Below, piece by piece: positions 5,446 to 63,552 of a stretch of DNA of 64,000 nucleotides (positions are counted from its first letter, which is position 1; each line of letters opens with the position of its first letter). Under the pieces are notes generated by a model, which saw nothing but the letters and a program-made list of their open reading frames with translations, was not told the origin of the DNA and searched no databases. Location of the stretch: sequence record NC_023557.1. One strand, 5' to 3'. Both the position numbers and the translations under genes were made by a program.

Positions 5446-5473
5446 AGGAGAGCTTCGGCTCTCCTTTATGCCG
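5446..5473 (+). terminator. Hairpin AGGAGAGC-TTCG-GCTCTCCT followed by TTATGCCG
   Basis: Perfect 8-bp stem with cUUCGg loop right after the stop at 5437. Confidence 0.75.
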
Positions 5474-5709
5474 GCTAGATTTTCCACCCATCTCCTCTAT
5501 CGGACAACAGATATAGATAGCGTCTGATCAACGTCATTGATTACACCTTATTCTACAACCCCAACGTAACCTGTCGACATTCATAAGGGAATGCCACACC
5601 GTTGTTTATGTCCGTCCTTATAAAAGAAGCGACCAAGCAAAAGACCAATAATCCGCAAGCCTTCTTTAAACTAAACCTGTTCTCTTTTCTTATTAATCTG
5701 GAGTGTTGT

Positions 5710-6042
5710 ATGGATTTCTCATTTCTACTTGATCAAAACCCGTTGAGCTATTACAAAAACGAGTTACCGGCCTTAGTCCGTGAACTTAATGGCTCGGTGG
5801 AAGATGATGCCCGTGTTTCTTGTGAAGACGCGCTGAATGCGCTGGTGCATCTGTTTGCGACACCGGGTGAGCTCATCAGCCTTACTATTCAGCGCCACTG
5901 TGGTATTGTGGAGCAGAAGCTTCGCTATACGGCAAAGTTCATCAATGACACAGTGGCTACAGTCGAAGGACCTGAACCAATGGATCTGCGCTATGTGTTA
6001 GGGACTGCAGTATTTAACGCCATTACCATTCCTATCAAATAA
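5710..6042 (+). CDS. Hypothetical protein (about 110 aa)
   Basis: Track ORF 5602-6042; GGAG RBS favours ATG at 5710. Confidence 0.6.
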   Translation: MDFSFLLDQNPLSYYKNELPALVRELNGSVEDDARVSCEDALNALVHLFATPGELISLTIQRHCGIVEQKLRYTAKFINDTVATVEGPEPMDLRYVLGTAVFNAITIPIK

Positions 6043-6044
6043 AT

Positions 6045-6085
6045 CGGCATAAGAGGAGAGGCAAATGCCTCTCCTCTGTTATGCT
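6045..6085. terminator. Bidirectional hairpin CGGCATAA-GAGGAGAGGC-AAAT-GCCTCTCCTC-TGTTATGCT
   Basis: 10-bp stem between convergent genes with a TATGC motif on each strand. Confidence 0.75.
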
Positions 6086-6103
6086 ACTTCTTTTTTTTTT
6101 GGT

Positions 6104-8959
6104 TTAGAACGTGAACTTCGGGTTTTTCGAGTCGTCGTCGTTGAAGTCGTCATCCGTCGGATCTTCAAGACTCGGATCAGCAGCATCATCATCCGGATTA
6201 GTGGTATCGTCCGGGTTCTGTGTGTCATCCGGGTTCTGCTCATCTACCGGAGGTTCGTCACCATCGGTCGGTGGTGTCGGCATGGCAAACGGGTCAGCTT
6301 CACCCTCATCCGGTACAGCGTTCGGATTAGCGGCGGTGTCACCTAGCTGCTCATCTTCCTTCAGCTTATCGTATTTACTCTGCAGCTTCTCTTCGACTTT
6401 CTTCTTATCTTTCAGATACGTGAGAATGCCTTCCCAGACATTTTCATTGTAGCTGATGATTTCAGAAAGCAGGGCAGCGGTAGCGTTAGTGTCTTCACCC
6501 AGATCATTCAGGATTGCGTATTGCTGCGCATTACCGGAATCATCCATCCACTTACGCATGTACATTGCCACCAGAGACTGACGCCAGGTTTCCAGATCCT
6601 CTTCAGAGCCATCCAGGAACTTGCCCACCACAGCATCTGGGAAGCGGTCATTGATGACAGCCTCGGTGTGCTCACGACGTGTCTGGTAGGCACGGGTGAT
6701 CTCTTCCAGGTCGGTGGTTTCAGGTTCAGGCAGAGTGACGATGATTGAGTTAATGAAGTTGGTCAGCAGACGGGCTGCAATCGCACCTTCATCCTTAGCA
6801 ACATCCGGGTTATTGGCTTTAAAGTCCTCAAACATCTTCTTGCCTTTAGCCGAAGACGGACTCCAGAGATTCTTGTTGTTATGAATGATGTCGTACAGTT
6901 CATTCATCAAGTTACCGGACTTGGCAGTCAGTTTACGCACCAGGTCAGAGGCATGACCACACACCACACGTTGTGACACGGTGATCTCTTGCGAGTACAG
7001 CGCATCGTTGTTGATGTGTTCGATGGCAAACTTGATGTCGTTCTGCGACGAGATGAGTTCAGGACGAATCCCCCACATCTGTGACAGGAACTCCATCAAG
7101 CGGTCATTCCACTCTGGATCAGGCGGGGTGATGTCACGCTTGCCGTGAGAGATATCTGCATCAATCGACGGGTAGTGATCGTTACCACTGGTCTTTACAA
7201 TCACGCTGGCACTGTCAAGGATGTTACACACATCACGCGGGTTCTTGGCACCGATGATCGAGGAGAGACCCAGGGTGGAGTTCAAGTGCGTGGTGATCAC
7301 ATCTTCGATGGTGTTTTCTGGCTCTGGGTCATCCTCATCCAGCGGGATGTTCAGGGTGGTGATGTTCACTGAGTTCGCGACGTTAGCAAGCGTAGTCGCA
7401 ATGATGTTGGTCATCGCCATGGACGCATACAGACGTGAGCGGTCTAACAGAGAACGACCAATACCAAACCGGTTATAGTCGAAAGCGAAGTAGGTCATCG
7501 CTTCTTCTGGCAGGTACAGGATACGGGTCTGCAGGTTACGGCAAGTACGGGCAAACATGATACGCATGACTTCGTTGGTTAACCCCACGGTCATGGTCTG
7601 ACCATAGGTGCCATTAGCCAGGCGCTGCACCAGATCTTTCTCCACTTCTTCGACATACTTGTTGTAGAAGGCAGACGTATCAAAGGTACATTTATTACCC
7701 GACTTCATCTCCGCCGCCATGGCAATGATGCCTTTGGTGCTGTCGATGGCGCTGTTGGTATCCTGACGGTTCTTCATCTGATCTTGATAGAACTGATCAT
7801 TCTGCGCCGTGCGTACCGGGTTGCCGTGTTCGTCCAGCAGAACGAAGTAACCCACGCGGTGTTTAAAGTCACCTGGGACGTGTACCGGGATCACACACTC
7901 TGAGGGCAGGTGCATCAGTAATGGCTGACCAACGTTTTCTTTAGACAGCTCGTCGTCACGTCCGACCGTGATGTTATTGGTCGCTACGTAATCACGCTGT
8001 TTAAAGAGGTCGTTGTAGACATTGCTGTACTGCTCATCCGTCAACACCGGCGTCTGGGCAACTTTGCTGTCTTTGTCCTTACCGCCTTTTGCTTTCGCCC
8101 CGCCTTTATCTTCCAGTGCTTCCATACCGGCACGGCGCAGACCTAACGGGATACGGTTCTTCTTCGACAGGTTGTGGCGAGCCAACGCCAGCTTAAAGCG
8201 TGGCAGACTTAACACCGCATCGTTATCGGTGATGGTTAACCCTAACTCATTTTTATTATCACCATTCAGATGATGCATGGTCATAATAGGCGTTTCGCCA
8301 CTCATCAACGATTCGAGTGACGCGGTCATCAGCATATTAGAACTACCTGGGTTACCCAGATAGCCACGAGAGCGGAACTGTTGGGAGTGTGCGTCGTAGT
8401 CATCAGCAATCGCTTCCATACCAGAGCCACGGGTATAACCGTTAATCACGTTATCCAGTGACGACTGGGAAAGCACCGCCCAGGCTGAGGAACCGGTCTT
8501 AAATAACATGTCCGGAACGATGTCAGCAAGTTTGTCAGTAATTTTATAGTTCTTTTCTATGTACTCCCGCACTGCGCTGATCAAAAGACTGTTAAGCTCT
8601 GTGTTCTTACCCTCATACGCTTCTGTGGTATAAGTCAGGGAGACCGTGCGTAAGTTACGCGGAGAGAGAATAGACGCCGTAAGGATCTTACACGCCTTTA
8701 AGGCTCCGGGTACACTTTCCATCAATTCGGTATTCGAGTCGATACTGGTACTGGTCAGTTTGGAGATGTTTTGGAGCATCCCTGCAGAAGGACCACCATC
8801 CCGGTTGGAACGTCCTGTACGTTTGGACGTATCCCGCGGTTTGTTGTCCTTCGGAACCAGTATGTCAATGATCGCTTTTGTCGCAGGATCTTTATTGAGT
8901 AAATTCAGTTTTGGCGTAGCAGCACGGCTGTTACCTGCCAAGCGATTCGATTCGGCCAT
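6104..8959 (-). CDS. Portal protein (phiKZ gp129-like)
   Basis: About 950 aa on the opposite strand; ILTASILSP, TGSSAWAVLSQSSLDNVING and HLPSECVIPVHVPG...GYFVLLD motifs as I recall for phiKZ-family portals; acidic D/P tail; probable start 8959 (AAGGAG RBS). Confidence 0.7.
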   Translation of the reverse strand: MAESNRLAGNSRAATPKLNLLNKDPATKAIIDILVPKDNKPRDTSKRTGRSNRDGGPSAGMLQNISKLTSTSIDSNTELMESVPGALKACKILTASILSPRNLRTVSLTYTTEAYEGKNTELNSLLISAVREYIEKNYKITDKLADIVPDMLFKTGSSAWAVLSQSSLDNVINGYTRGSGMEAIADDYDAHSQQFRSRGYLGNPGSSNMLMTASLESLMSGETPIMTMHHLNGDNKNELGLTITDNDAVLSLPRFKLALARHNLSKKNRIPLGLRRAGMEALEDKGGAKAKGGKDKDSKVAQTPVLTDEQYSNVYNDLFKQRDYVATNNITVGRDDELSKENVGQPLLMHLPSECVIPVHVPGDFKHRVGYFVLLDEHGNPVRTAQNDQFYQDQMKNRQDTNSAIDSTKGIIAMAAEMKSGNKCTFDTSAFYNKYVEEVEKDLVQRLANGTYGQTMTVGLTNEVMRIMFARTCRNLQTRILYLPEEAMTYFAFDYNRFGIGRSLLDRSRLYASMAMTNIIATTLANVANSVNITTLNIPLDEDDPEPENTIEDVITTHLNSTLGLSSIIGAKNPRDVCNILDSASVIVKTSGNDHYPSIDADISHGKRDITPPDPEWNDRLMEFLSQMWGIRPELISSQNDIKFAIEHINNDALYSQEITVSQRVVCGHASDLVRKLTAKSGNLMNELYDIIHNNKNLWSPSSAKGKKMFEDFKANNPDVAKDEGAIAARLLTNFINSIIVTLPEPETTDLEEITRAYQTRREHTEAVINDRFPDAVVGKFLDGSEEDLETWRQSLVAMYMRKWMDDSGNAQQYAILNDLGEDTNATAALLSEIISYNENVWEGILTYLKDKKKVEEKLQSKYDKLKEDEQLGDTAANPNAVPDEGEADPFAMPTPPTDGDEPPVDEQNPDDTQNPDDTTNPDDDAADPSLEDPTDDDFNDDDSKNPKFTF

Positions 8960-8991: not shown

Positions 8992-11367
8992 ATGAATTTA
9001 AATGTGGACTATACAATTTACGTGGATAACACCAAGAAGCTTATCCGCACAATGGTCATTAATTCGGCTCAATCAGCTAATATAATTAACGGCCGTATGG
9101 ATGGCTTGGGGTACGGTCGTGACATCTACGACAAGAGTACCTGGAAGTACTACATGAACATGGCCGGGATCTACCATCCGTCCAATGACCGGATGCAGGT
9201 GAAGTCACTCGATAACGGTCAGCTCATCGACTTTACCCGTGAGAACATGGAGATCCATGTCAGCACCAAACGCAGCTACCAGTACGGCACCGACTATTAT
9301 AAAGCCCTGGTTGCGCAGTACCCGTATCAGATCGCGTTGATCAAGGGGATCTTAAACCCAATTGATCTCAGTGTCTCAACCACCGCCGAGGACTGGCAGA
9401 TCCTCTATTACGATAAGACGCTGGTAGAAGATGGTGAAGAGAACCTGATCCCCCGTTTCCAGGAGTGGGTCAACACCCTGATCACCCAGACCTATCTGCC
9501 GGACTATGTCTACATCACCGAAGATCTGATGCACCACTTCTATCTTTCCTTAATTGGTGGTTTTGGTCCTGGTGTGATCTTGGGGATTCGCTTAGAGAAC
9601 ATCAAAACCAACCGGGCACACAGTTTCCATATCTGGTCGCACATTCTGTCGCATGCTGATATTGAGCAGTATCGCCCGTACCTGAACCGCAAGCAGATCC
9701 TCTATCTGTATCGCAACATTGTGTGGCACACCCGCAACCCGGGTGCACAATACTCCTTCCAGAAGATGATCGACGCCTTCTTAACGGAACGCCGCATCCC
9801 ATTACAGTCGTACAACGCCCAGCACAACACCTCGAGCATTCTGACCAAGATTAAACCCGAGGTGGAGTTCAAGCGTGAACTGCTGAACATGCAAGATGCG
9901 ATTGCCAATGTGAACTATGTGCGCAGTACCCGTGAGATCCTGGAAGATGAAGTGCCGCTGGCGAAGAACAACGCCGACGTGTACGAAGACCGGATCGGGG
10001 AAGTCATTCAGGATGTCGGGACCAACCGCAACAGTAACCTCCCGACCAAAGTGCTGGAATCCAACATGCGGGATCTGTCTGACTCGCTGCCGTTCTCACA
10101 CTCCCTGACATTACTGAACGAATGGGTGCGGTTGTCCTCTACGGGCATGTATACCGCGGTGATCACCACTACCAACCCCAATACCGGGCTGACCATGACC
10201 ATGACGGTAAAGGAAGCGTTTATCCTTTATCTGTACGGTGTCTGGCAAAGTCACGGAGTTAACTTGGAGACGATCCCAACCTTCCGTGCCAACATGGTAA
10301 TGAAGATCCCTCGGCCGCAGTTTGCGTTCTTAAAAGCCCAATACGGCTCGCAGCACGTCACCGACGAGTTCATCAAATACGCCCTGAATCTTTGTCCGGA
10401 TATCCCGGCGATCATCTCGACAGAAACCTTCTATGCGAAGACGCTTGAGATTAATGCCGCGACCCAACTGCACCGGGATCTGTACAGCTACCGTAACCAT
10501 TATCATGCGCGGGCAGAATTCGAAGCCCTGGCCTTTGGTTTCTACCAGGATCAGGATTGCGACATCAACTCCGGCATGACCTATAAGGAGTTCTTCAAAC
10601 AGAAGGGGTGGGACTTCACTGACTTACCGCCGGAAGAGTGGGTGGTGTTCGCCAACAAGGTCTCCTCGATTGCCACCGGGTTGGATACGGCTAACCAGCA
10701 GAAGCTCGCGGATATTCAGCAAGCCATGTTGGGCCTGACCATGCAGCTGTCCAGTTACACCATCCAAGTGATCAGGAAGATCAATGAAGAAGCGGTGGTG
10801 ATGCTTGACTGGCCAACCTTGCGCGGGGGTGACATGCACATGAAGGTCTATCAACAGTGGCACTTGGTGGATAACCCTGTGCGACCGATCGATACCCACA
10901 TGCGTGAGAAGAAGACCTACAACCTGATCCACGACTTCCCGAAAGGCCATAACTCGGTAGAGCGCAGCTGGCGCTTCTATATCGACACCGCACGGCAGTT
11001 AAGTAGTCAGGGAATCAACTCCCGTTACAACTATTTAAACGGCGCACGTATGCGGTTGTGGACGGCTGACGATGCGGCGGGTACCGAGAACGAGTTTGAC
11101 CAGCAGATGACCGTGAAAGATCTGCAAGGTCTCTGGATTGACCCGTACGGCGATGCCCGTCCGCCGGCTGACTTCAGTGCAGAAGTGTTGAACGGATTGT
11201 GGACTGATCCGTTACCCGGGATTGCACCAATCGTTAGTAGCTTGGGTGGGTTGTGGATCGATGGTCCAAAGAGCAGTGGTTTTGATGAGGATCTCAACGG
11301 ACTGCATGCTGAAGTCCCTGCGGCATTACAAGCCTTACGCAATACCCCGGGTGATAGCACCACGTAA
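8992..11367 (+). CDS. Virion structural/baseplate protein (phiKZ gp128-like)
   Basis: About 790 aa divergent from the portal; KYYMNMAGIYH...SLDNG...YP.Q..LIKGILNP motif; GGGAGA RBS before ATG 8992. Confidence 0.65.
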   Translation: MNLNVDYTIYVDNTKKLIRTMVINSAQSANIINGRMDGLGYGRDIYDKSTWKYYMNMAGIYHPSNDRMQVKSLDNGQLIDFTRENMEIHVSTKRSYQYGTDYYKALVAQYPYQIALIKGILNPIDLSVSTTAEDWQILYYDKTLVEDGEENLIPRFQEWVNTLITQTYLPDYVYITEDLMHHFYLSLIGGFGPGVILGIRLENIKTNRAHSFHIWSHILSHADIEQYRPYLNRKQILYLYRNIVWHTRNPGAQYSFQKMIDAFLTERRIPLQSYNAQHNTSSILTKIKPEVEFKRELLNMQDAIANVNYVRSTREILEDEVPLAKNNADVYEDRIGEVIQDVGTNRNSNLPTKVLESNMRDLSDSLPFSHSLTLLNEWVRLSSTGMYTAVITTTNPNTGLTMTMTVKEAFILYLYGVWQSHGVNLETIPTFRANMVMKIPRPQFAFLKAQYGSQHVTDEFIKYALNLCPDIPAIISTETFYAKTLEINAATQLHRDLYSYRNHYHARAEFEALAFGFYQDQDCDINSGMTYKEFFKQKGWDFTDLPPEEWVVFANKVSSIATGLDTANQQKLADIQQAMLGLTMQLSSYTIQVIRKINEEAVVMLDWPTLRGGDMHMKVYQQWHLVDNPVRPIDTHMREKKTYNLIHDFPKGHNSVERSWRFYIDTARQLSSQGINSRYNYLNGARMRLWTADDAAGTENEFDQQMTVKDLQGLWIDPYGDARPPADFSAEVLNGLWTDPLPGIAPIVSSLGGLWIDGPKSSGFDEDLNGLHAEVPAALQALRNTPGDSTT

Positions 11368-11368
11368 C

Positions 11369-11400
11369 CGGCATAATGAGGGGTCGTCACTGACCCCTCA
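11369..11400 (-). terminator. Hairpin TGAGGGGTC/GACCCCTCA with the TTATGCCG motif facing the minus strand
   Basis: 9-bp stem preceded by CGGCATAA, the reverse complement of TTATGCCG. Confidence 0.6.
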
Positions 11401-11446
11401 AAAGTAATCCTATGTTTACACCACCTCTACGCCTAAGGAGAACCAC

Positions 11447-16124: not shown

Positions 16125-16177
16125 CAGCATAAAGACAGAGAGCTTCCTTGCGGAGGCCCTCTGTCTTGTTTATGCCG
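16125..16177. terminator. Bidirectional hairpin flanked by CAGCATAAA and TTTATGCCG
   Basis: AAGACAGAG/CTCTGTCTT outer stem between convergent genes. Confidence 0.7.
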
Positions 16178-27570: not shown

Positions 27571-27616
27571 CGGCATAGAGGGAGAGGTGTTAACCTCTCC
27601 CTCGTGCTTTATGCCG
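27571..27616. terminator. Bidirectional hairpin CGGCATA-GAGGGAGAGGT-GTTA-ACCTCTCCCTC-GTGC-TTTATGCCG
   Basis: 11-bp stem between convergent genes; motif on both strands. Confidence 0.8.
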
Positions 27617-35275: not shown

Positions 35276-35307
35276 GGGAGGGGCGCAGGTCTCTCCCTTT
35301 TATGCCG
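35276..35307 (+). terminator. Hairpin GGGAGGGGC-GCAG-GTCTCTCCC followed by TTTTATGCCG
   Basis: Stem plus family motif. Confidence 0.7.
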
Positions 35308-40426: not shown

Positions 40427-40436
40427 CTTACTTCTG

Positions 40437-40465
40437 GGGTGAGTGAAAACTCACCCTTTATGCCG
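40437..40465 (+). terminator. Hairpin GGGTGAGT-GAAA-ACTCACCC followed by TTTATGCCG
   Basis: 8-bp stem, GNRA loop, family motif. Confidence 0.75.
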
Positions 40466-46076: not shown

Positions 46077-46104
46077 AAGAGGACTTCGGTCCTCTTTTAT
46101 GCCC
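46077..46104 (+). terminator. Hairpin AAGAGGAC-TTCG-GTCCTCTT followed by TTATGCCC
   Basis: cUUCGg hairpin plus family motif. Confidence 0.75.
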
Positions 46105-47093: not shown

Positions 47094-47123
47094 GGAGAGG
47101 CGCACAGCCTCTCTCTTATGCCG
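47094..47123 (+). terminator. Hairpin GGAGAGGC-GCACA-GCCTCTCT followed by CTTATGCCG
   Basis: Stem plus family motif. Confidence 0.7.
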
Positions 47124-49562: not shown

Positions 49563-49588
49563 GGGGAGGGAAACCTCCCCTTATGCCG
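49563..49588 (+). terminator. Hairpin GGGGAGG-GAAA-CCTCCCC followed by TTATGCCG
   Basis: GNRA hairpin plus family motif. Confidence 0.75.
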
Positions 49589-51118: not shown

Positions 51119-51129
51119 GAGAGGGCGCC

Positions 51130-53012: not shown

Positions 53013-53074
53013 GCGTGACTTGTCATTGTTTCACTTTGTTCTACTACACAAACAGCTCAACTCTCTCATAATTC

Positions 53075-53105
53075 AAGGGGTGGGGTAACTCACCCCTTTA
53101 TGCCG
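53075..53105 (+). terminator. Hairpin AAGGGGTGGG-GTAA-CTCACCCCTT followed by TATGCCG
   Basis: GNRA hairpin plus family motif. Confidence 0.75.
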
Positions 53106-53120
53106 CAAGGATCTATTATC

Positions 53121-53453: not shown

Positions 53454-53649
53454 TTTGTGGTTGTACATTGCAATCTTTCTGCTCTGTTATATCTGGGCAT
53501 TTTTCGGTCTTCCACCTACCGGTAATAAAAGAAAGCTTTATCTGTATCCGGGAATCGTTGCAGTAGCGTTCTGTTTAGGTGTAATGGCGATTAAGAACTG
53601 CAGTGATTCAACCACACGATATCAACCGCTGTACAACGTGCATCAATAA
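53440..53649 (+). CDS. Small two-TM membrane protein
   Basis: AGGAG RBS; LWLYIAIFLLCYIWAFF and LYPGIVAVAFCLGVMAI. Confidence 0.55.
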   Translation: MYMTDLWLYIAIFLLCYIWAFFGLPPTGNKRKLYLYPGIVAVAFCLGVMAIKNCSDSTTRYQPLYNVHQ

Positions 53650-53652
53650 CGG

Positions 53653-53680
53653 GAGGAGGCTTTGGCCTCCTCTTATGCCG
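53653..53680 (+). terminator. Hairpin GAGGAGGC-TTTG-GCCTCCTC followed by TTATGCCG
   Basis: 8-bp stem plus family motif. Confidence 0.75.
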
Positions 53681-53750
53681 ACTATTCTTTTTTGGTTATT
53701 TCCTACATCTACCCGCAAATCATTTAGCCCATTATACACTGGAGTTGTTC

Positions 53751-54305: not shown

Positions 54306-54315
54306 GGAACCAAAC

Positions 54316-55026
54316 ATGATCGTTGTTGTTGTTGATACTGAATCGACTGCTTTGGATGAACTCGCGGGTATTCTGAGTTTGTCCGCTATTCGCACTAACG
54401 TGGCTGACATGAGTTGCATCAAGCACCTGATCGGCGTGCACCAAGCCGGCAAGACGCATGACGACATCTTCCATGCCGTATTGAACCTCAATGAACAATA
54501 CGTGATGGGTCGTACCTTCTTGCAAAGCACGCAGGATTGGTGGATGAAGAAAACCACCCCGGCGGCGAAGGCTTCAGTAACCGGACCAACGCAGTCTGCA
54601 AAAGATGCTTTGACAGCATTTGTGGCTTTCATCGAAAAGGCCATTGAGGCGACGATTAAAGAACGCGGGGAGAAAGCGAAGGTCCAGCTGTACTACCGTG
54701 GCGACTTCGATGCCAAAGCCATTGCGTCCCTGGCAAAAGCGGTGGGTGTTGAACTCCCGTATATTTTCAATCAGAACAAAGAGATCCGCACATATATCGA
54801 TGCCAAGCTGGACACGGATATCGGTTATATCCCGTGGCTCGGTTACCCAGAAGGACTGGGGCGTCATAGCTCACTCGATGATGTTCTAATCGATGGCTTC
54901 GAGATGGCGGTGGCCTATCGCATCAATCACCTCGAAAAGTTCGATAAAAAGTCGGTGCCGGGCGAGATCGCCAAACTGAAAGAAACGTACCCTATTCCGG
55001 AGAAAACTCATGCAAAATCTAAATGA
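54316..55026 (+). CDS. DEDDh 3'-5' exonuclease (DnaQ/RNase T-like)
   Basis: VVVDTEST (Exo I), GDFD (Exo II), HSSLDD (Exo III). Confidence 0.8.
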   Translation: MIVVVVDTESTALDELAGILSLSAIRTNVADMSCIKHLIGVHQAGKTHDDIFHAVLNLNEQYVMGRTFLQSTQDWWMKKTTPAAKASVTGPTQSAKDALTAFVAFIEKAIEATIKERGEKAKVQLYYRGDFDAKAIASLAKAVGVELPYIFNQNKEIRTYIDAKLDTDIGYIPWLGYPEGLGRHSSLDDVLIDGFEMAVAYRINHLEKFDKKSVPGEIAKLKETYPIPEKTHAKSK

Positions 55027-55732
55027 CCGTATCTTTGCCAATTATGATGGTCACATTGAAGCTATTGATGCGCATTTTAAACCTACCTATCAACTGCAGC
55101 TGGCTGAGCAAGTCATCCCGGCTGAACAGATGGATAAGCTTGTAACCTGGATGGACCACAACGCCCATGTCAAAGGTGCGACGGTCTACCTGATGGAGTT
55201 GGTGCCTGATCTCGATAAACCGCATCCTGCACAATCAGAGATGCGTGTGTTTATTGCACTCGGTATGTTTAATCGTGAAGTCAACCCTGATTTGCCTTAC
55301 TGGTGTCATGTACATCACCATTATCCGGTTAACCTCGCTGTCGACTTGATTGTTACTGACCTGCAAGGCGTTCCTGTAACCCATGCCGTTCTGACTGCGT
55401 TTAAGTCATTTGATCGAGCGCGTACCTACAGGGATAATCTCGGCGGCAAAGGTGGACATCAACCGCATCACGAAATCCATACTGGCATTATTGACCAAAG
55501 TGGTAAGGTGATCTTCGAAGCCTACGGGAATATCAACTGGCATACCAAGAATGCCATTCGCCTGCTGGCTGAACGACAGATCCTACAGGAAGATACCGAG
55601 TTGTCAGCGGTGTGGTTACTGGCGGGTTTAAAAGCAGGTGTCAACTGGAAAGTCGAAGACCACGTTGACATCATGAAGGCAATCGATACTTTCCGTCCGA
55701 GGAATACCCATGATTTTAACGGCTATGTTTAA
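55010..55732 (+). CDS. Hypothetical protein
   Basis: 240 aa, GGAGA RBS. Confidence 0.6.
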   Translation: MQNLNDRIFANYDGHIEAIDAHFKPTYQLQLAEQVIPAEQMDKLVTWMDHNAHVKGATVYLMELVPDLDKPHPAQSEMRVFIALGMFNREVNPDLPYWCHVHHHYPVNLAVDLIVTDLQGVPVTHAVLTAFKSFDRARTYRDNLGGKGGHQPHHEIHTGIIDQSGKVIFEAYGNINWHTKNAIRLLAERQILQEDTELSAVWLLAGLKAGVNWKVEDHVDIMKAIDTFRPRNTHDFNGYV

Positions 55733-56474
55733 GAAGTGCTTTGGTGCGTCGTCTGTCTATAAAGAAGATGACGGCAGTACACGCATTACCGCTGACCAGT
55801 ATGAACTTACGCTGGGTCGATCCTACCATCCTAAGCTCAAGCGTAAGGTGGGTCGGGGATTTGGCTTCTATGTCGAAAATGGCGAGAAGCTCGAGTTCGT
55901 CTTGCGGGGTTACTGGTTTGTGTTGATCGCCTGGAGCAAGAAGCGCAAATCACTCAATTGGGAAGAAGCGGAGAATGCACCGACTTACGGCTTCAATGTT
56001 GTTGACTCTGACTTAGCGATCTATCTCGGCAACGAATCCGCTAAGTCAGACAAACACATCAGCATGCGTAGTCGCAGCAAATACATCCCCCTGCCCTGGG
56101 CCTGGGTCTTCCATAAGCGTGAAGTGTTAACCACCCGTGACACCTGGGCTGATGTCAAAGAAGGTGCGCTGTCTCAAGAGTGGTCGTTCCCCGCCACATA
56201 CATCACCAAGCACAATGAAGTGCAAGAGATGATGATCGAAGCGAAGATGGAGCGCATGACCTGGCGTCTGGCATGGCTCCCTTGGTTCGCTCCGGTTACC
56301 AAGAAAGACCGCTCAGCGAGTTACAAGTACCACGGGAACGGTGGTAACGGGGTTGGTCACGATGCCAGTGGGTGGAAAGGCGGGGTCATCGGTGGCGGTA
56401 TTATCATGCGGGACAATGAACACAACCCGAAAGAAACATTCGACCGTTTAATTAAAGAGCAGCATTACGGCTAA
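55710..56474 (+). CDS. Hypothetical protein
   Basis: 254 aa, Trp-rich. Confidence 0.6.
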   Translation: MILTAMFKKCFGASSVYKEDDGSTRITADQYELTLGRSYHPKLKRKVGRGFGFYVENGEKLEFVLRGYWFVLIAWSKKRKSLNWEEAENAPTYGFNVVDSDLAIYLGNESAKSDKHISMRSRSKYIPLPWAWVFHKREVLTTRDTWADVKEGALSQEWSFPATYITKHNEVQEMMIEAKMERMTWRLAWLPWFAPVTKKDRSASYKYHGNGGNGVGHDASGWKGGVIGGGIIMRDNEHNPKETFDRLIKEQHYG

Positions 56475-56486
56475 GAAGGAAAGCAC

Positions 56487-57638
56487 ATGCGTCAGTATTT
56501 GGATGGGATTCGTTACATCTTTGAGAACGGGTCACAACGAGGGGATCGCACCGGGGTAGGTACGTTGTCGGTGTTCTCGATGAAGCAGACTTACGATCTG
56601 CGTCTGGGATTCCCGCTGGTCACCAGTAAGAAAGTGCGTATCGATTTTATTATCGAAGAGCTCATCTCTTTCCTATCGGGTGACCCTGATATGCCGGGTG
56701 TGGGTATCTGGGATGATTGGCGTGTCAAAGACGAAGTCTCTCGTGAAGTCCCGTTAGAGAACCACGAGCGTTTAAAACTCTGGGTTGAGAAGTCGGACCT
56801 GAAGTATAACGTTGCTTACCTTCAACTCAATGCGATGGGTTCTGTCGAAGCGGGTCATCGTTTCCTGGATGAGCAAGGGATTCCACGTAACAGAAAAGAA
56901 GTACTGGTAGCAGAAGGTGCACTCAATGCACCCTATGGGCCAGCGTGGCGTGCGTGGAAAGGTCGTCTGGGCGAAGTGCATGATCAGATCGGTTATCTGC
57001 TCAAGCTGCTTAAAAACAATCCTACGAGCCGTCGTATGCTATTGTCTGCTTGGGACCCGGCGAACATGCCGGATGAGTCTATCAGTCCGCAGGATAACAT
57101 CATTGATGGCAAGCCATGTCTGACTCCGTGTCATTGGGCGTTTGAGCTGTACACTGACGAAATCCTGGCAGAGGAACGCCTTGATTGGGTCGAAGCTAAT
57201 GCACCTAGCCTCTGGGAAGACTACAATGATCGTTCAGGTCGCGGTCAGTGGTTAGGCGACACAGACAGTAAGCGCCTTCATGAATTCCTGGACGAAGCCG
57301 GCGTACCGAAGTATTACCTGGATCTGAAGTATCACCAGCGTTCCTGTGACTATATGGTTGGCGTGCCGTATAACATCGCCAGCTATGCGGTGTTGCAGCA
57401 CATGTTCGCCGCCACCTGTAACATGATCCCGCGGATACTGGAAGCGGATATGACTAACATCCATATCTACAACTTCCACAAAACCAATGCGGTCATGCAG
57501 GCCAGTCGCAGCCCACGCACACTACCCACTCTGAAGGTACTCGCCGCTCACGATAAGTTGGAAGACTATACGTTGGAAGACTTTGAACTCGAAGGTTATG
57601 ATCCGCATCCTTTTATTAAATATGAAAGAGCGGTCTGA
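56487..57638 (+). CDS. thyA: Thymidylate synthase with two insertions
   Basis: DRTGVGT, FPLVTSKK, YGPAWR, SRR, PCH catalytic Cys, QRSCD...GVPYNIASY, HIY. Confidence 0.95.
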   Translation: MRQYLDGIRYIFENGSQRGDRTGVGTLSVFSMKQTYDLRLGFPLVTSKKVRIDFIIEELISFLSGDPDMPGVGIWDDWRVKDEVSREVPLENHERLKLWVEKSDLKYNVAYLQLNAMGSVEAGHRFLDEQGIPRNRKEVLVAEGALNAPYGPAWRAWKGRLGEVHDQIGYLLKLLKNNPTSRRMLLSAWDPANMPDESISPQDNIIDGKPCLTPCHWAFELYTDEILAEERLDWVEANAPSLWEDYNDRSGRGQWLGDTDSKRLHEFLDEAGVPKYYLDLKYHQRSCDYMVGVPYNIASYAVLQHMFAATCNMIPRILEADMTNIHIYNFHKTNAVMQASRSPRTLPTLKVLAAHDKLEDYTLEDFELEGYDPHPFIKYERAV

Positions 57639-57670
57639 CCCACTGGTGCGTTGAAGGGAGCACAACGGTA

Positions 57671-58036
57671 ATGAAGAGAGAGTCCAGTTACACCCTGGTC
57701 TTTGGGGAAGGTAGTACTGAAGAAGATGTCAACACCCTGCGTGAGATGGTGTCACACATGCGGGGGTTGACCGGGTTGTCGCAGCTGGGGGCGTTTGAGG
57801 TGTTCGTTACCCATTATGAATTGCAACGTAAAGACGCAGGGCTGATCATCAGTGATCTTCCGGTGAATGCACAGTCGTTGTTTGATGTCAGTGATCGACA
57901 GAACTGGCTGACACCGCTGTTCACTTCACGGGGGTTAGTGGCGTGTGACTTGTTGTTGTTACTGAAGCAAGGCAAATGGACCGGAGAACACCTCAAGGTG
58001 ACCTTTCGGGTAAAAGGCATCAGGGCGAAAGCATAA
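57671..58036 (+). CDS. Hypothetical protein
   Basis: 121 aa, GGGAG RBS. Confidence 0.55.
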   Translation: MKRESSYTLVFGEGSTEEDVNTLREMVSHMRGLTGLSQLGAFEVFVTHYELQRKDAGLIISDLPVNAQSLFDVSDRQNWLTPLFTSRGLVACDLLLLLKQGKWTGEHLKVTFRVKGIRAKA

Positions 58037-58042
58037 CGCATA

Positions 58043-58070
58043 CGGAGGGGTCATTCCCTCCGCTATGCCG
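58043..58070 (+). terminator. Hairpin CGGAGGGG-TCAT-TCCCTCCG followed by CTATGCCG
   Basis: Stem plus family motif; upstream GCATA extends the pairing. Confidence 0.7.
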
Positions 58071-58168
58071 ATTAAGTTTTTGACAAAGTTTACTGCAGAT
58101 CTTTTCAGACCTATATCACGTCGGTGAATAACCTTTCACTAATTAACCAATCCGTAGGGAGTTTTATC

Positions 58169-59545
58169 ATGGCTGCATTAAAATCTAAAGTTGAACTGTT
58201 TCACTGGTATCAGGAACTGAAAACTGAATTTAAAACCGGCAAGATTACCGTGTTCGAATTTGAGCGGCAAGTGCTCAGCGAAATTCTTTCCCTGACCGAT
58301 ACTGGTAAAACACCATCTACTGCCAAAATCAGTTTGGTAGTGGACATCCTTAATTCTGTGGTTTTTGATCATGTGTTTACCGCAGACGGTATCATTGACC
58401 TGGACAACATGCTCGCTCGTGAACACGTACGCAACATTTCGGAATTGACGGCAGCACGCAATAACTTTATTACCATACAAGCCCAGGCCCGTCTGAACAA
58501 AGAAAAGGAACAGACTGCGAAACCAGCAGAGCAGAAGGCATTTGCCAAGTTTCCAACGAAAGAAGAGCTCGAATATTGGGTTAATGCCAGAAAGCTATTC
58601 CGTTATGGTAACCCCAATACGCTCGGCACTGAAGCATACCAGGAGGTTGTCAAATACTGGCATCTGGTCGATAAATATCTGGGTACATTAAAACTGGAAC
58701 TGGATCACACCGACCCTAACTACGTCGATAACATCCTGTTGATTGACTACTTTGTATCGTTGGTCGCCAAGCAAGAGGTTCCTGAGGAAGAACGCAGGCA
58801 TCTGAAAGACACACTTAGCAGTCTATATGCGTGCCCCATTAAAACCCCACACATCGATGCATTTGTCGAACGTGGCCAACACCCCCTTCCAGTTAAGCCA
58901 AAACAACCACCCATCGCGCAACAAGCCATCGACCGCGCTATTGCCTGGCGTGAAGAGGAAACCAAAACAAACCATCAGCAAAAAGACATATTACGAGAAT
59001 TCGCCGATCAATACTGTCCGGTAATGGTGGCCAAGCAACATGCCACTCAGCAGTTGTTTGATTTCGTTGCTCGTGCGGTGAAACGTGTCTTGACCGCCAT
59101 TGCTCAGCCAAACAACCCGGAAGACGCCGAGATGCTGGCAAAAGGTCATGCCATCAACATTCTCAATGTTAAGCATGGTGTAATTGGTGTCAGTACCACG
59201 ATTACCAGAAACGGTCTGGTCAAGTTACGCATCTTCGCTGAACGTGAACTATGTAACGAGGACTACGGTATTCCGACTCTGTCGTATAATCAAGTCCGTC
59301 AATCACCTCATGCAACGTTCAGCATACCAGTGCCGGCACTGATAGATGGGTTCATTAACATGTGGGATATCCCTAATCAGGCCCCTCGCCATATGCATAA
59401 TAGCGTAGGCGGTATGTTGGGTAATCCCTATCCGTTACAGCAGCTTGATGGTTTAATGTCAGCTATTGCAAGAGAAGCAGCCGAGTACGGCGTTACGCCT
59501 ACTTATGGTAGTACTGAAGACAGCCTTATCGTTGTTCTCCATTAA
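58169..59545 (+). CDS. Hypothetical protein, paralogue of the next gene's N-terminal domain
   Basis: WYQELKTEFKTGKI and LIDYFVSLV...RHL motifs; AGGGAG RBS. Confidence 0.65.
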   Translation: MAALKSKVELFHWYQELKTEFKTGKITVFEFERQVLSEILSLTDTGKTPSTAKISLVVDILNSVVFDHVFTADGIIDLDNMLAREHVRNISELTAARNNFITIQAQARLNKEKEQTAKPAEQKAFAKFPTKEELEYWVNARKLFRYGNPNTLGTEAYQEVVKYWHLVDKYLGTLKLELDHTDPNYVDNILLIDYFVSLVAKQEVPEEERRHLKDTLSSLYACPIKTPHIDAFVERGQHPLPVKPKQPPIAQQAIDRAIAWREEETKTNHQQKDILREFADQYCPVMVAKQHATQQLFDFVARAVKRVLTAIAQPNNPEDAEMLAKGHAINILNVKHGVIGVSTTITRNGLVKLRIFAERELCNEDYGIPTLSYNQVRQSPHATFSIPVPALIDGFINMWDIPNQAPRHMHNSVGGMLGNPYPLQQLDGLMSAIAREAAEYGVTPTYGSTEDSLIVVLH

Positions 59546-59553
59546 TCCACACG

Positions 59554-59580
59554 GGGAGGTTCGCCTCCCTTTTATTTTTT
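59554..59580 (+). terminator. Canonical intrinsic terminator GGGAGG-TTCG-CCTCCC followed by a T-rich tail
   Basis: GC stem plus long U-tract, no TATGCC. Confidence 0.75.
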
Positions 59581-59606
59581 AATTAACCTACTGTGAGAAT
59601 TTAACC

Positions 59607-60308
59607 ATGAACAAAGAAACTTATACTACCTGGTACAATGGATTAAAAGAAAGATTGGCGGCAGGTGACATTGATCAAGTTACTTATGAATCGCTTATCA
59701 TCAGTAATCTTCATTCGTTGCTGACTCGACACAGGCATACCCGGCACGATATTAACCATCTGCCGTTACCAAAACATTTCGAACTGATTAACCATTATTT
59801 CGAACTGATTGCTGATGCAGAAATGTCAGAAAGAAATGCCAGACATTTAGTCTCTTTTGTGGCCAGTATTATCGAGGCGATCCCGGCAGCCAGGGCATTC
59901 GGAAAGAAACATAACACACCACTACCCCCTTCTAAGGAAGAGCTCGAGGGTAAACTTGCTTGGGGGCGTAAGAAAGTCGCTACCCCAACTGAAGCGATGC
60001 GTGGTCGTCCGGTGATCACCCAGGTCAACGAACCTGAGAACGAAGTAACCATTGAACTACCCTGGAAAACCGCATTGCACGTTTACAAAGGGTTCCTGGT
60101 AAAGGCACTGATGTCAAAGCACGGATACCAATACAGTGATGCGTATAGCTACATTACTGATCATCAGAACAAATACGACGAACTCTTGGCAGAAGTCCTC
60201 AACAGCATTATTGCTAATAAAGAGTCGCATCTGGTGTCGGTAGGTGGCGGCATCACTGCAGCGGGTACTGGTCTGGTGGTAAGCGGGATTATTAAGCCGG
60301 AGGAGTGA
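59607..60308 (+). CDS. Protein with a C-terminal segment resembling the RNAP beta-prime dock region
   Basis: GRPVIT...LPWKTALHVYKGFLVKALMSKHG...DELLAEVLNSII. Confidence 0.6.
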   Translation: MNKETYTTWYNGLKERLAAGDIDQVTYESLIISNLHSLLTRHRHTRHDINHLPLPKHFELINHYFELIADAEMSERNARHLVSFVASIIEAIPAARAFGKKHNTPLPPSKEELEGKLAWGRKKVATPTEAMRGRPVITQVNEPENEVTIELPWKTALHVYKGFLVKALMSKHGYQYSDAYSYITDHQNKYDELLAEVLNSIIANKESHLVSVGGGITAAGTGLVVSGIIKPEE

Positions 60309-60868
60309 TGAAAGGAGAGATAGAGACACGCTTCAGAAGACACTACGGCAACCACATTAAACGGGGTAGTGATATCGCAGTGCCTTTATACCACATTAGT
60401 CTACAGAATGACTTGGAGGGGCTATGGCGACCTAAAGCCCCTGACTCGCCATTTGATATTCCGAAGAAACCCAGCATCATTACTGAAATGCCGCTCCCGC
60501 GTATCTGTGTAGCGCCATCTATCGAACAGTGCTTCTGGGCAATCTATCCCAATATCTCTAAGCTCTTTGAAGAGGAAGAATACGCAGCGGTTTGTTTTGC
60601 GGTTTATCAACCGATTCTGCATGCCGGTATTGCTGTTGTGGATGCCAGTACGTTAACGCAATGCCGACTGGTGCACGATGCACATATTACCGGCGAGCAT
60701 TGGTTACTCAGCGATACCACCATGTGTGTGATCGACTTTATTCAAGTTAAGAACACCTCACACGGTGAGTTCGTAAAGTTCCATCCGTTTGATACTCCGG
60801 TTGGTAACGAGTGGGAACTTGCCCCTAAAAATGTTGTTTATCATTCACTTAAATTAACGGAGTTGTAA
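60305..60868 (+). CDS. Possible ADP-ribosyltransferase-fold protein
   Basis: LYHIS ... PRICVAPS ... DAHITGEHWL: H, S and E strands in ART order. Confidence 0.35.
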   Translation: MMKGEIETRFRRHYGNHIKRGSDIAVPLYHISLQNDLEGLWRPKAPDSPFDIPKKPSIITEMPLPRICVAPSIEQCFWAIYPNISKLFEEEEYAAVCFAVYQPILHAGIAVVDASTLTQCRLVHDAHITGEHWLLSDTTMCVIDFIQVKNTSHGEFVKFHPFDTPVGNEWELAPKNVVYHSLKLTEL

Positions 60869-60872
60869 ATCC

Positions 60873-61517
60873 ATGGTAACTGCTAGAAAAGCTAATAAGA
60901 CCTTAGGTGAGCACGCGGTGGCTCATGAGGCAGTAACACGCTTAGGTAGCAATAAAAAAGTCAAACCAGTTAAGCCGCTTTGGACACTGGAGAACATCGA
61001 GGACAATCTGGTTGGTCAAGGTATCCTTGCCTACTTGAAACGCCACACGTCGTTATCGATCCGTGACATCAACACCGCGGCTAACCGCCTGACGAAGATT
61101 GCTGATTCAGATATAAAGGAAGGGAAAGCGCGTGATTACGTGGCACGAGTTATTGGGTACAATAATTACGACGCTCTCAACGTCACCGTTCGTGCAGCGG
61201 TGCCTGTGCGCAATCATGTACAACGTCGTAAAGCAAATCAACCGGTCACAGAGCTGCTGATAGAAGACGAGGAACTGCCGCCGGTAACACATACTGAAAT
61301 CAACCCCTTGGTGATGTTAGCCCTACAGCGTGAGATCTCTAAACGCGGCTTTCGTCTCCTTGGTAAGAACTACCGGGCTTTCGTTAACAAGGATAACCCC
61401 GAGCACACCTTTACGTTGATGCAGGCGTATAACTACCTTGCCAAACAACTGGGTTATCCGGACTATCACTCTATGCCCCGTCAGTACCCAATCATTAACT
61501 TGCGCTACGTCGATTAA
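60873..61517 (+). CDS. Protein with a duplicated small helical domain
   Basis: ARDYVARVIGYNNYDAL and AYNYLAKQLGYPDYHSM. Confidence 0.6.
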   Translation: MVTARKANKTLGEHAVAHEAVTRLGSNKKVKPVKPLWTLENIEDNLVGQGILAYLKRHTSLSIRDINTAANRLTKIADSDIKEGKARDYVARVIGYNNYDALNVTVRAAVPVRNHVQRRKANQPVTELLIEDEELPPVTHTEINPLVMLALQREISKRGFRLLGKNYRAFVNKDNPEHTFTLMQAYNYLAKQLGYPDYHSMPRQYPIINLRYVD

Positions 61518-61539
61518 CCTATTGTAAGGAATAAAGAAC

Positions 61540-62289
61540 ATGATGACGACTTTCCCGAAAGAGATGAATGCAGCTTTCCATCCTGATAACGAACAAACCA
61601 CTCAGCTGTGCAAAACGATCCAGCAGATCAGCGGAGTGGAGATCAAACGTGTACATGTGGTGATGGCGATCCACCATTACAAACAAAACGATGCGGCACA
61701 TCAGCCTGACCACATGCTGGCGGTCTTAGCAGAAGCAGCCCACATCATCCAGTCGTTTCCTGACCTGGAGAAATGGCGCACCCAGATCATGTTAGGGTGT
61801 CTGTTCCATGACACCCACTGTCACATCGATCGGGATATGCACCACCTGCTAGGCGCCGAACATGCTCAAGAGGCATTACTGGAGTATGCGTGCGGTTATG
61901 GGATGTCACGTGCGGATGTCTACCTGATCAGTCAGGCCGTGCTGGAGCATCGGGCTTCCTGGAAGTACCCGCGTATTAACCCTGTATCCAACGCTGTGGC
62001 GTCTGCAGATCGTGGCTACCCTGATCTAAAGAAATACATCCGTCGTGCTGTACAGTACCGTTACAAGCGCACGGCAGTCATCAACATGAACACCGTCATC
62101 GATGAGTCGATCGAGCACATGGTAGAGAAGTTCGGGGATGGCGGTTATGCCTGGGAGAGCTACCCGACGTATGCAGCAGTGATGCACGGTGATGCGATCC
62201 AACAAGTGAAGCAACAACTGCGCAGTAAAGAAGGAAAGGCGCAACTCAAAGAGTACGCTGAACTCCACTTTGATGAGTGGGTAGAGTAA
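61540..62289 (+). CDS. HD-domain phosphohydrolase
   Basis: HQPDH ... LFHD ... HHLLGAEHA ... VLEHR ... ASADR metal-binding set. Confidence 0.8.
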   Translation: MMTTFPKEMNAAFHPDNEQTTQLCKTIQQISGVEIKRVHVVMAIHHYKQNDAAHQPDHMLAVLAEAAHIIQSFPDLEKWRTQIMLGCLFHDTHCHIDRDMHHLLGAEHAQEALLEYACGYGMSRADVYLISQAVLEHRASWKYPRINPVSNAVASADRGYPDLKKYIRRAVQYRYKRTAVINMNTVIDESIEHMVEKFGDGGYAWESYPTYAAVMHGDAIQQVKQQLRSKEGKAQLKEYAELHFDEWVE

Positions 62290-62297
62290 GCTACGTG

Positions 62298-62327
62298 GCC
62301 GGAGGTAATCCTCCGGCTGTTATGCCT
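62298..62327 (+). terminator. Hairpin GCCGGAGG-TAAT-CCTCCGGC followed by TGTTATGCCT
   Basis: 8-bp stem plus family motif. Confidence 0.7.
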
Positions 62328-62449
62328 GTTCTTTCTTCTTTGTAATTCCCAACACATTCGGTCTTTGTTATACAAAGGCTATAATCTTTGTCCCGAGCTA
62401 AGGGTAACGTGAACAGTTATGCTGGCTTACTTTTTAAAGGTATCTTTTC

Positions 62450-62980
62450 ATGGATGTTTTATTTAATCTCTCCTCATGGCAATCGCTTTTACTTGTGGTA
62501 GTCGTACTCCTACTGTGGTTGTATTACCAACGACTTCAACACCTGCGTCGTAAGTATCATCGTCGTAATGAACGCATGATGGCGCAGAGCGTGGTCATGA
62601 CATCCCGGCTGTTACTGAGTACCTTCTCGGAGATTGTGGAACGTGCTAAGGAAGAGGACATCTACCAGCGTGATCCTAACTCCCCGATTGCGGCAGACCG
62701 GGCCAGTGCGATGGCCTGCTCCTCCATCTTCAGTGGGTTGTATAACCTGGTTGTGGTGCCCGTCACCACCCTTGATCCGGTGTTCAACGATTTATTGATT
62801 ACCGGTACTGAGCGGGAAGATGTTGAGGAAGGGGTCTTTGTGTCGTTTTATTTGGGTGAACAGCGTAATGATGTGGTTAGGCATTTTATACCCGACCGGT
62901 CGTTACAGGCCTTTATCACCCAAACGCGTGCCTTCAGTGCTTACCTGCGACAGGCTGCGAATACAAAACCACCACAATGA
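62450..62980 (+). CDS. Single-pass membrane protein
   Basis: N-terminal TM followed by a basic stretch. Confidence 0.6.
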   Translation: MDVLFNLSSWQSLLLVVVVLLLWLYYQRLQHLRRKYHRRNERMMAQSVVMTSRLLLSTFSEIVERAKEEDIYQRDPNSPIAADRASAMACSSIFSGLYNLVVVPVTTLDPVFNDLLITGTEREDVEEGVFVSFYLGEQRNDVVRHFIPDRSLQAFITQTRAFSAYLRQAANTKPPQ

Positions 62981-62988
62981 GGTGACAC

Positions 62989-63519
62989 ATGACCAATTAT
63001 GGTTTTCTGCTGAACACAGTACTTCTGGCTTTTCTTATTTGGTTTGGTTACCGACTGCACACGTTGGTAAACAACAGCGAGAAAGCCACCCTCGCCGCTG
63101 ATCATAACGCCAAGCTGCGCTTCCTGACCTATGCAGCCCGGCAGATAATGAGTGACTTGTATACGTCGCTCAATCTTCCGACGCTCACCGGGTGTGCGAA
63201 GATGTATCTACGTGATGACGGCAAGCTTGATAATATTGAAGTCATTATGCGACTCTTCATGAAAACCCATAATGAGATTATTACCAAGCTCTCCGAGGGA
63301 TTGGTGTCGGATCATTTGAAGATCACCGATGTTAAAGTTACCCATGATCTGGTGACCAACGAAGTGCTCATCACACTCTTGTATCCGAATAAAGTCACTG
63401 ACATCCTGGTCTTCCATCATAACCACCTGGCGCAGGCGATCTACCAGCTGGATCGATTGCAGCATCGGCTCTCAACGTTCCACAAAGCGGTGCCGAACCG
63501 CGACCTGTACCAACTCTAA
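62989..63519 (+). CDS. Single-pass membrane protein
   Basis: N-terminal TM, GAGGTG RBS. Confidence 0.6.
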   Translation: MTNYGFLLNTVLLAFLIWFGYRLHTLVNNSEKATLAADHNAKLRFLTYAARQIMSDLYTSLNLPTLTGCAKMYLRDDGKLDNIEVIMRLFMKTHNEIITKLSEGLVSDHLKITDVKVTHDLVTNEVLITLLYPNKVTDILVFHHNHLAQAIYQLDRLQHRLSTFHKAVPNRDLYQL

Positions 63520-63522
63520 ACC

Positions 63523-63552
63523 AAGGGAGGGCTTCGGCTCTCCCTTATGCCA
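63523..63552 (+). terminator. Hairpin AAGGGAGGGC-TTCG-GCTCTCCCTT followed by ATGCCA
   Basis: cUUCGg hairpin plus family motif. Confidence 0.7.

Follow-up and report, generated by a model that had tools for sequence, protein, structure and literature searches.

In Erwinia phage Ea35-70, genes recurrently end in a GC-rich hairpin that is followed by a fixed sequence, UUAUGCCG (a tail also written hairpin-UUUAUGCCG). We conclude that these sites are very likely the main terminators of the phage, of the type known from phages phiKZ and 201phi2-1, and we infer that the GYY-G end of the tail contributes a pause. The DNA analyzed here, a stretch of 64,000 nucleotides (nt) called the window, is identical (100%) to bases 1-64000 of the Ea35-70 genome, which is 271,084 bp long and belongs to the genus Agricanvirus.

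Ea35-70 encodes a nuclear shell protein (chimallin), the tubulin PhuZ, split RNA polymerase subunits and orthologs of gp71-73 and gp123. The nuclear shell, PhuZ and the split polymerase subunits together make it a phiKZ-like, nucleus-forming jumbo phage, and both marks of the phiKZ clade, multisubunit polymerases of its own and a nuclear shell, were found. Such phages transcribe their genes with highly divergent multisubunit polymerases, and the mechanism by which these enzymes stop is poorly understood.

Hairpins of Ea35-70 are coupled to a fixed tail

We scanned the whole 271-kb genome for perfect hairpins of at least 6 bp with at least 4 G-C pairs, using a scan blind to the motif. Among the 163 hairpins found, counted as 326 orientations, TATG starts 0-6 nt after the stem in 67 and TATGCC does so in 41, compared with 0.6 expected (binomial p ~6e-62). 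A chance origin of the coupling between hairpin and TATGCC is excluded. At the 67 sites, the three bases after TATG are predominantly C (55/67, 84%), C (47/67, 71%) and G (43/67, 65%), and an unbiased count of 5-mers behind hairpins gives TATGC, TTATG, ATGCC and TGCCG as the most enriched.

A first-pass annotation of the window had described a family of 13 intergenic hairpins with a TATGCC-type tail. Its list actually holds 14 loci, and all of these sites are present, each as a stable stem-loop with TATG 0-4 nt 3' of the stem and mostly reading (T)TATGCCG. Their folding energies lie between -11.7 and -26.8 kcal/mol, and their z-scores relative to dinucleotide shuffles between -3.0 and -7.9. 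One full minus-strand site was absent from that list, with its hairpin at 11377-11400 and TATGCCG at 11375-11369.

A MAFFT alignment of the 41 sites was not structural, and a covariance model was instead seeded with 7 sites of equal geometry. The model reports about 42 sites genome-wide at E <= 0.016. The covariance search that had been proposed as a check finds 13 of the 14 listed loci again, together with 11366-11401(-), but it under-counts phiKZ and 201phi2-1; the model is biased toward stems like those of Ea35-70, whose 5' arm is purine-rich, and phages are more fairly compared by k-mer counts. No Rfam family matches anywhere in the 64-kb window.

The tail is distinct from a canonical U-tract. 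When positions 44001-64000 were tested for at least five U in the eight bases after the stem, the hairpin at 59553 passed alone, the motif sites having 2-4 U followed by AUGCCG, and a plain U-tract scan of the same region detected no motif site. The hairpin at 59553..59580 (plus strand, after Ea357_069) is our contrast case of an ordinary hairpin with a U-run; it had been reported as a terminator free of the motif, and the U-run is there, but its tail UUUUAUUUUUU still contains UUAU.

The element probably marks transcript ends and is selected as RNA

The first T of TATG lies 27-60 nt past a same-strand stop codon. Genome-wide, a motif hairpin is found in 18 of the 34 convergent gaps (11 of these with the motif on both strands), in about 29 of 251 tandem gaps in the sense orientation and in one of 34 divergent gaps, counts for which the gene map outside the window is an approximation based on open reading frames, with a few true intergenic sites misfiled as coding. 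This distribution over gap types is that of a transcript-end signal, not of a promoter. The first-pass annotation had tied the motif to transcript 3' ends and not to starts, and the data bear this out: sites follow same-strand stops, convergent gaps are filled and divergent ones avoided, G.U pairs are tolerated on the motif strand only, and the motif matches the one mapped in phiKZ and 201phi2-1.

At two-way sites, one strand usually reads TTATGCCG, and the opposite strand reads TTTATGCTGC ahead of T9-10. Pairing of the flank CGGCAUAA with UUAUGCUG, G.U pairs included, takes the stem down to the U-run. This pairing of the motif copies accounts for the TATGCT variant at 6045. In convergent gaps, the motif is complementary to the opposite flank, and its copies therefore pair, lengthen the stem and often lead into the plus-strand T9-10 run.

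The pattern of mismatches in the stems indicates the level at which the hairpin is selected. With G-T and A-C mismatches scored equally in placing the helices, stems of one-way sites contain 23 G.U and 1 A.C, and those of two-way sites 4 G.U and 5 A.C. Wobble is tolerated on the motif strand only, and the hairpin is therefore selected as RNA on that strand. Covariation is consistent with this structure: 96.7% of alignment cells are paired, both-sided changes occur in all eight stem pairs, and double changes occupy 164 cells compared with 45 in shuffles (0/500 shuffles as high), figures that lean toward structure, the alignment having been fitted to it.

Correspondence with the terminators of phiKZ and 201phi2-1

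RNA 3' ends of phiKZ have been mapped by Oxford Nanopore Technologies (ONT)-cappable-seq, revealing a conserved stem-loop with a TTAT motif at 61 terminators (Putzeys et al., 2024, Microlife; PMC10914365). The published consensus is BCCYCCCCHWWDGGGRRGGBYTTATKYYGT (PMC10914365). Motif A of the 201phi2-1 terminators, obtained with the same method (n=59 terminators), is the same element, and eight 201phi2-1 terminators caused a strong stop in a reporter trap in uninfected Pseudomonas chlororaphis (PMC11512511).

Judged by its sequence, the Ea35-70 element is best described as this already known phiKZ motif in a stricter form. Three features of a phiKZ-type terminator were found, namely a stem-loop followed by TTAT-K-YY-G, a position at sense gene 3' ends and a hairpin that acts as RNA. 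Both phages belong to the clade with two multisubunit polymerases, and in both a GC-rich stem-loop with a 4-5 nt loop directly precedes TTAT-K-YY-G-T at gene ends, serving two ways where genes converge. The Ea35-70 tail is stricter, reading TATGCCG where phiKZ has TATGYYG with many T, and the 5' arm of the stem is purine-rich (GGAGAGG) in Ea35-70 and pyrimidine-rich in phiKZ.

201phi2-1 likewise combines a hairpin with TTTATGYYG, and its RNA ends before the G. At its sites with two motifs, A and B, the second motif lengthens the stem, as does CGGCATAA pairing with TTATGCYG in Ea35-70. Its tail is more variable than that of Ea35-70 (TATGTT, TATGAC, TATACC), and the in vivo activity cited above belongs to 201phi2-1.

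We located the 201phi2-1 ends relative to the element from the eight end positions printed in the text of that single long-read study (PMC11512511) and the DNA fetched around each. Seven of the eight ends fall on the second base that follows UAUG or UAUA, 8 nt beyond the stem, and the next template base is the conserved G; the eighth lies one base earlier. At 179,552 and 229,201 the element is an exact TTATGCCG copy, and the RNA ends on its second C. Transcription therefore stops just short of the conserved G. A phiKZ RNA, 270595-270485, has its 3' end 7 nt past a hairpin and its 5' end right after a TATG that has no hairpin. By homology, the RNAs of Ea35-70 should end at ...UUAUGCC. A search of sequencing runs for Ea35-70 found the phage in DNA runs only.

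We found no published description of the element for the genus Agricanvirus. The genome paper of the genus ran MEME/FIMO and dropped the motifs as insignificant, and a literature text search for the motif string returned no description, its one jumbo-phage match being a polymerase chain reaction primer for phage Miami.

The polarity of the stem also varies among phages. A GGAGAGG-like 5' arm, which resembles a ribosome-binding site, occurs in Ea35-70, Klebsiella phage Eowyn and Proteus phage 10, and CCCTCCC occurs in phiKZ and 201phi2-1. Within a genome, this 5'-arm polarity is identical on both strands.

Conservation among related phages

In the Erwinia phage AH06 (about 75% identity), orthologous gaps keep TTATGCCG with rewritten stems, for example after the orthologs of Ea357_050, 068 and 075. 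The consensus hairpin-(U0-3)-UAUGYYG(U) was found in the whole genomes of Ea35-70, Proteus phage 10 (GC 40%), Eowyn, phiKZ (GC 37%) and 201phi2-1, and in 18-46-kb pieces of pEa_SNUABM_48, Xanthomonas phage RTH11 (GC 57%) and Ralstonia phage RSF1. The RSF1 piece has just one or two sites, and the whole RSF1 genome shows no excess of the 8-mer; the signal in Goslar is weak. Across five genera and a 20-point range of GC content (37-57%), the A, G, Y, Y and G of the tail are kept. In Bacillus phages the signal is absent: tails are U-rich, with TATG behind 4 of 122 hairpins in AR9 and 0 of 74 in AgentSmith.

A stop signal mapped in two Pseudomonas phages is thus common to relatives infecting Erwinia, Proteus, Klebsiella and Xanthomonas, in a sharper form. 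It can be given a testable definition, a hairpin and an 8-nt tail UUUAUGYY followed by G, which may be used for drawing transcription units in unstudied chimalliviruses, for correcting start codons set on the ATG of the motif and as a compact terminator in engineering.

Proposed mechanism of termination

In the mechanism that we propose, a GC-rich hairpin would fold in the nascent RNA right past the stop codon, and the polymerase would add about eight more bases, (U)UUAUGCC, before releasing the RNA just ahead of the conserved G. As in ordinary terminators, the hybrid of RNA and DNA would be weak over the short U-rich start of the tail (UUUAU). The fixed GYY|G end, where the last RNA base is a pyrimidine and the incoming base a G, may act as a sequence-specific pause in place of the distal U-tract.

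Like an intrinsic (Rho-independent) terminator, the element has a GC-rich RNA hairpin, a U-rich tail start, two-way use and, as predicted here, release 7-9 nt past the stem. Unlike one, it has no run of 5-8 U, and positions 4-9 of its tail are fixed as AUGCCG. The fixed A, G, Y, Y and G are beyond what the intrinsic-terminator model explains. Studies from 2014 using native elongating transcript sequencing (NET-seq) reportedly found a bacterial elemental pause consensus in which the RNA ends in a pyrimidine and G is the following base. The 201phi2-1 ends resemble it in these two positions (7/8), and the G at -10 of the elemental pause is present in the stems of phiKZ and 201phi2-1 but not in those of Ea35-70.

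The first-pass annotation had raised the possibility of a terminator specific to the phage RNA polymerase. A terminator with a fixed non-U tail is what we find, but exclusivity does not hold: 201phi2-1 terminators act in uninfected P. chlororaphis, and because these elements work with the host polymerase the signal is not exclusive to phage enzymes. Conservation within one clade over a 20-point GC range, together with absence from AR9, points to the phage polymerases as the selective force.

Several points weigh against termination by hairpin and tail as described. Given the host-polymerase activity of the 201phi2-1 terminators, the fixed tail may be dispensable for release. For Ea35-70 and its genus the 3' ends are placed by homology, the positions of 3' ends called by ONT may be slightly and systematically shifted, and exonuclease trimming can also give 3' ends 7-8 nt past a hairpin. 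Two complete motif hairpins, 11375(-) and 201614(-) (L005:1603-1638(-)), are antisense to their neighbours, and neither has the end of a minus-strand gene close by; they may terminate antisense transcription or belong to minus-strand RNAs that lack annotation. Finally, the terminators at 47117, 49582, 53099 and 35301 lie only 19-39 nt before the next start codon, leaving no room for a promoter, so that either these terminators leak or transcription restarts there.

The TATG of the element is also the four-base core of phiKZ late promoters, an overlap that poses a concrete mechanistic question for holders of the purified phiKZ enzyme and its structures. In phiKZ, a pocket in the beta-lobe of gp123 holds the late-promoter TATG as single-stranded non-template DNA (PMC12809450). 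Ea357_002 (1041..2729, plus strand) is annotated just as 'polymerase' and matches 7ogp chain E (E 2.8e-44); it is the ortholog of the beta-N-like subunit gp123 of the phiKZ non-virion RNA polymerase. Seven of the 14 named pocket residues are identical (S144, F151, K158, K190, H331, S334, Q466), three are conservatively substituted (H185Y, Y399H, S402T) and N186R, S330P, N398I and Y406L differ. Searches for the gp123 ortholog starting from Ea357_266 and Ea357_162 gave nothing useful.

The same pocket of Ea357_002 might conceivably read TATG in the terminator. TATG would be grabbed in the moving bubble and the enzyme held while it adds two or three bases, so that it stalls at YY|G exactly 8 nt beyond the hairpin. 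Starting and stopping would then rely on a single recognition pocket, with the promoter core replacing the U-tract as pause element. The idea is attractive, but we regard it as speculative and rather doubtful, and Ea357_002 matters only for speculation on mechanism: the reading is out of register by two to three bases, and in the transcribing complex the pocket is reported to be incomplete (PMC12809450).

Alternative explanations

The element carries on the non-template strand a TATG identical to that of phiKZ late promoters (PMC4666361, PMC12809450), and TATG with +1 at G is necessary, though not sufficient alone, for initiation by the phiKZ non-virion RNA polymerase (PMC4666361). The hairpin could therefore end the upstream transcript while TATG also starts a new one with this polymerase, the leader beginning GCCG. 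Tandem sites fit this possibility, in that only 19-39 nt separate the motif from the next ribosome-binding site and ATG and another promoter would have no room there, as does a gp123 ortholog that keeps half of the pocket residues. We nevertheless consider such a double role unlikely. The motif is equally complete in convergent gaps (18/34), where a start would yield antisense RNA only, and nearly missing from divergent gaps (1/34), where promoters must lie. phiKZ late promoters, in contrast, can do without a hairpin, have a TATGTA-like sequence and stand upstream of genes; neither the validated promoter P119L nor the TATG with which the PHIKZ298 RNA is associated at its 5' end has a hairpin, and both read TATGTA, not TATGYYG. 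A late promoter should stand upstream of the genes it drives and in divergent gaps, and in Ea35-70 the motif instead is complete where no gene follows. The 3' ends of 201phi2-1 RNAs, two bases past the G, also speak against a start at this position.

Another possibility is that a nuclease or trimming makes the ends and that a phage protein lands on UUAUGCCG, for example one that stabilises the RNA or acts in its export from the phage nucleus. A fixed non-U sequence conserved in genomes of 37% to 57% GC suggests recognition by a conserved factor, and exonucleases stall a few bases beyond stable hairpins. We find this explanation quite improbable: an RNA ending at UAUGCC keeps seven motif bases only, with the conserved G left off, and eight homologous elements reduce a downstream reporter in uninfected cells, which is termination and not processing by a phage factor. 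In Ea35-70, the bases past the cut do not fit the preference of RNase E (position 8 is mixed), and RNase E-type cleavage was rejected, there being no U two bases after the cut. The sites could also be ordinary host-type intrinsic terminators, with UUUAUGCC as an imperfect U-tract and their sameness due to copying of one cassette; ARNold called the phiKZ sites intrinsic (PMC10914365), the 201phi2-1 sites function with the host polymerase, and the tail begins with 2-4 U. However, almost every site has a stem of its own, and the stems co-vary, hence the sites are not recent copies. The constancy of A, G, Y, Y and G over five genera, the failure of the U-tract scan to detect any motif site in 44001-64000 and the U-rich tails of the Bacillus relatives further make this reading very improbable. 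A signal at the level of DNA, such as a cruciform or a site for a DNA-binding, replication or recombination protein, is hardly conceivable: each site is a palindrome, perfect or nearly so, and the phage has SbcCD-like nucleases, but the excess of G.U over A.C on the motif strand (23 versus 1) is sensible for RNA only, and the orientation of the element tracks the direction of the upstream gene.

Predicted terminator sites in the window

We next list the predicted terminators of the window with their coordinates. On the plus strand after Ea357_004, site 5446..5473 consists of a hairpin at 5446-5465 and TATGCCG at 5467-5473, with the stop codon 30 nt upstream and a predicted RNA 3' end at 5472 (model E 3.8e-9; -17 kcal/mol, z -5.1). 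The two-way site 6045..6086 lies between the convergent genes Ea357_005 (+) and Ea357_006 (-). Its hairpin (6052-6077) is flanked by TATGCCG on the minus strand (6051-6045) and TATGCTA on the plus strand (6080-6086), the latter followed by a T10 run; in the plus-strand RNA, GCAUAA and UUAUGC lengthen the stem to the U-run (-26.8 kcal/mol). The additional minus-strand site, 11369..11400, is an orphan between the plus-strand genes Ea357_007 and 008 (model E 0.006; -17.5 kcal/mol, z -4.9).

Two further two-way sites separate convergent genes. Between Ea357_013 (+) and Ea357_014 (-), site 16125..16177 has a long interrupted hairpin at about 16133-16167, with TATGCCG on the plus strand (16171-16177) and TATGCTG on the minus strand (16131-16125; -24.3 and -24.6 kcal/mol). 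Between Ea357_020 (+) and Ea357_021 (-), site 27571..27616 has a hairpin at 27578-27603 and TATGCCG at both 27577-27571 and 27610-27616. The first-pass annotation had described the motif as full on both strands at 16125 and 27571. The minus-strand copy at 16125 is TATGCT and not TATGCC, and 27571 is the sole listed locus with TATGCCG both ways; its account of 6045, full on the minus strand with a TATGCT variant on the plus strand, is accurate.

All remaining sites are on the plus strand. After the transglycosylase gene Ea357_029, site 35276..35307, conserved in AH06 and Deimos-Minion, has a hairpin with G.U pairs (35276-35297) and TATGCCG at 35301-35307. Site 40436..40465, after Ea357_040, has its hairpin at 40436-40457 and TATGCCG at 40459-40465; AH06 keeps the motif there, with stem and loop altered. 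At 46077..46104, after Ea357_049, the hairpin (46077-46096) precedes TATGCCC (46098-46104; model E 4.6e-8), and in AH06 the stem is replaced and the tail is TATACCC. At 47094..47123, after Ea357_050, the hairpin (47094-47114) precedes TATGCCG (47117-47123) with the next start codon 24 nt downstream; AH06 has another stem and loop there with an identical TTATGCCGT.

Site 49563..49588, after Ea357_055, combines a hairpin at 49563-49580 with TATGCCG at 49582-49588 and adjoins the ribosome-binding site of the next gene. In the gap after a gene for an HNH endonuclease lies site 53075..53105 (hairpin 53075-53098, TATGCCG 53099-53105), and after Ea357_062 lies 53653..53680 (hairpin 53653-53672, TATGCCG 53674-53680, then T6-GGTTATT; model E 7e-10). 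Site 58043..58070, after Ea357_068, has its hairpin at 58043-58062 and TATGCCG at 58064-58070, and its AH06 counterpart has an unrelated stem with an identical TATGCCGATTAA tail. The last two sites end differently, with TATGCCT at 62321-62327 behind hairpin 62298-62317 (62298..62327, after Ea357_073; model E 0.55) and TATGCCA at 63546-63552 behind hairpin 63523-63543, which has one G.U pair (63523..63552, after Ea357_075; model E 9e-7). At the latter, AH06 keeps TTATGCCG with a changed stem. UUCG and GNRA loops, noted before at many of the hairpins, are indeed found, with UUCG at 5446, 46077 and 63523, GAAA at 40437 and 49563, and GUAA at 53075.

The annotated starts of Ea357_050 (46099) and Ea357_056 (49583) are ATG codons within the terminator motif. 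Proper ribosome-binding sites accompany in-frame starts at 46150 (Ea357_050) and 49601 (Ea357_056), and the AH06 ortholog of Ea357_050 is annotated 51 nt shorter, in agreement with 46150. We rejected the AUG of the motif as a genuine start codon, since genes in frame with it have a better start farther downstream, with a ribosome-binding site.

In about a dozen plus-strand terminators there is a distal T6-10 run that ends in G(G)TT, 8-15 nt after TATG. In the window these runs lie at 6091-6105, 53688-53700 and 63563-63575, and outside it at L002:26145, L002:30844, L003:18732, L004:20656, L004:27633 and L005:15594, among other places. Possible roles of the distal U-run are a back-up stop for another polymerase or a part of the next promoter.

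Other sequence features

A second dispersed motif, CAGACCTA(C/T)ATTA(C/T), occurs at 32767, 40067 and 58110 of the window, and there are about 25 plus-strand intergenic copies genome-wide (for example L002:15635, L004:18431 and L006:21049 outside the window). It is always found on the plus strand, a few tens of bases past terminators and upstream of genes, often after an A/T-rich stretch. It resembles TATATTAC, which we take to be the core of phiKZ early promoters. The CAGACCTA motif is probably a class of phage promoter.

The thymidylate synthase of Ea35-70 is encoded by a single gene in the window (56487-57638). In AH06, the thymidylate synthase (L008:23621-25615) is annotated in two pieces with a gene for an HNH homing endonuclease between them, a split that suggests insertion of an intron or intein.

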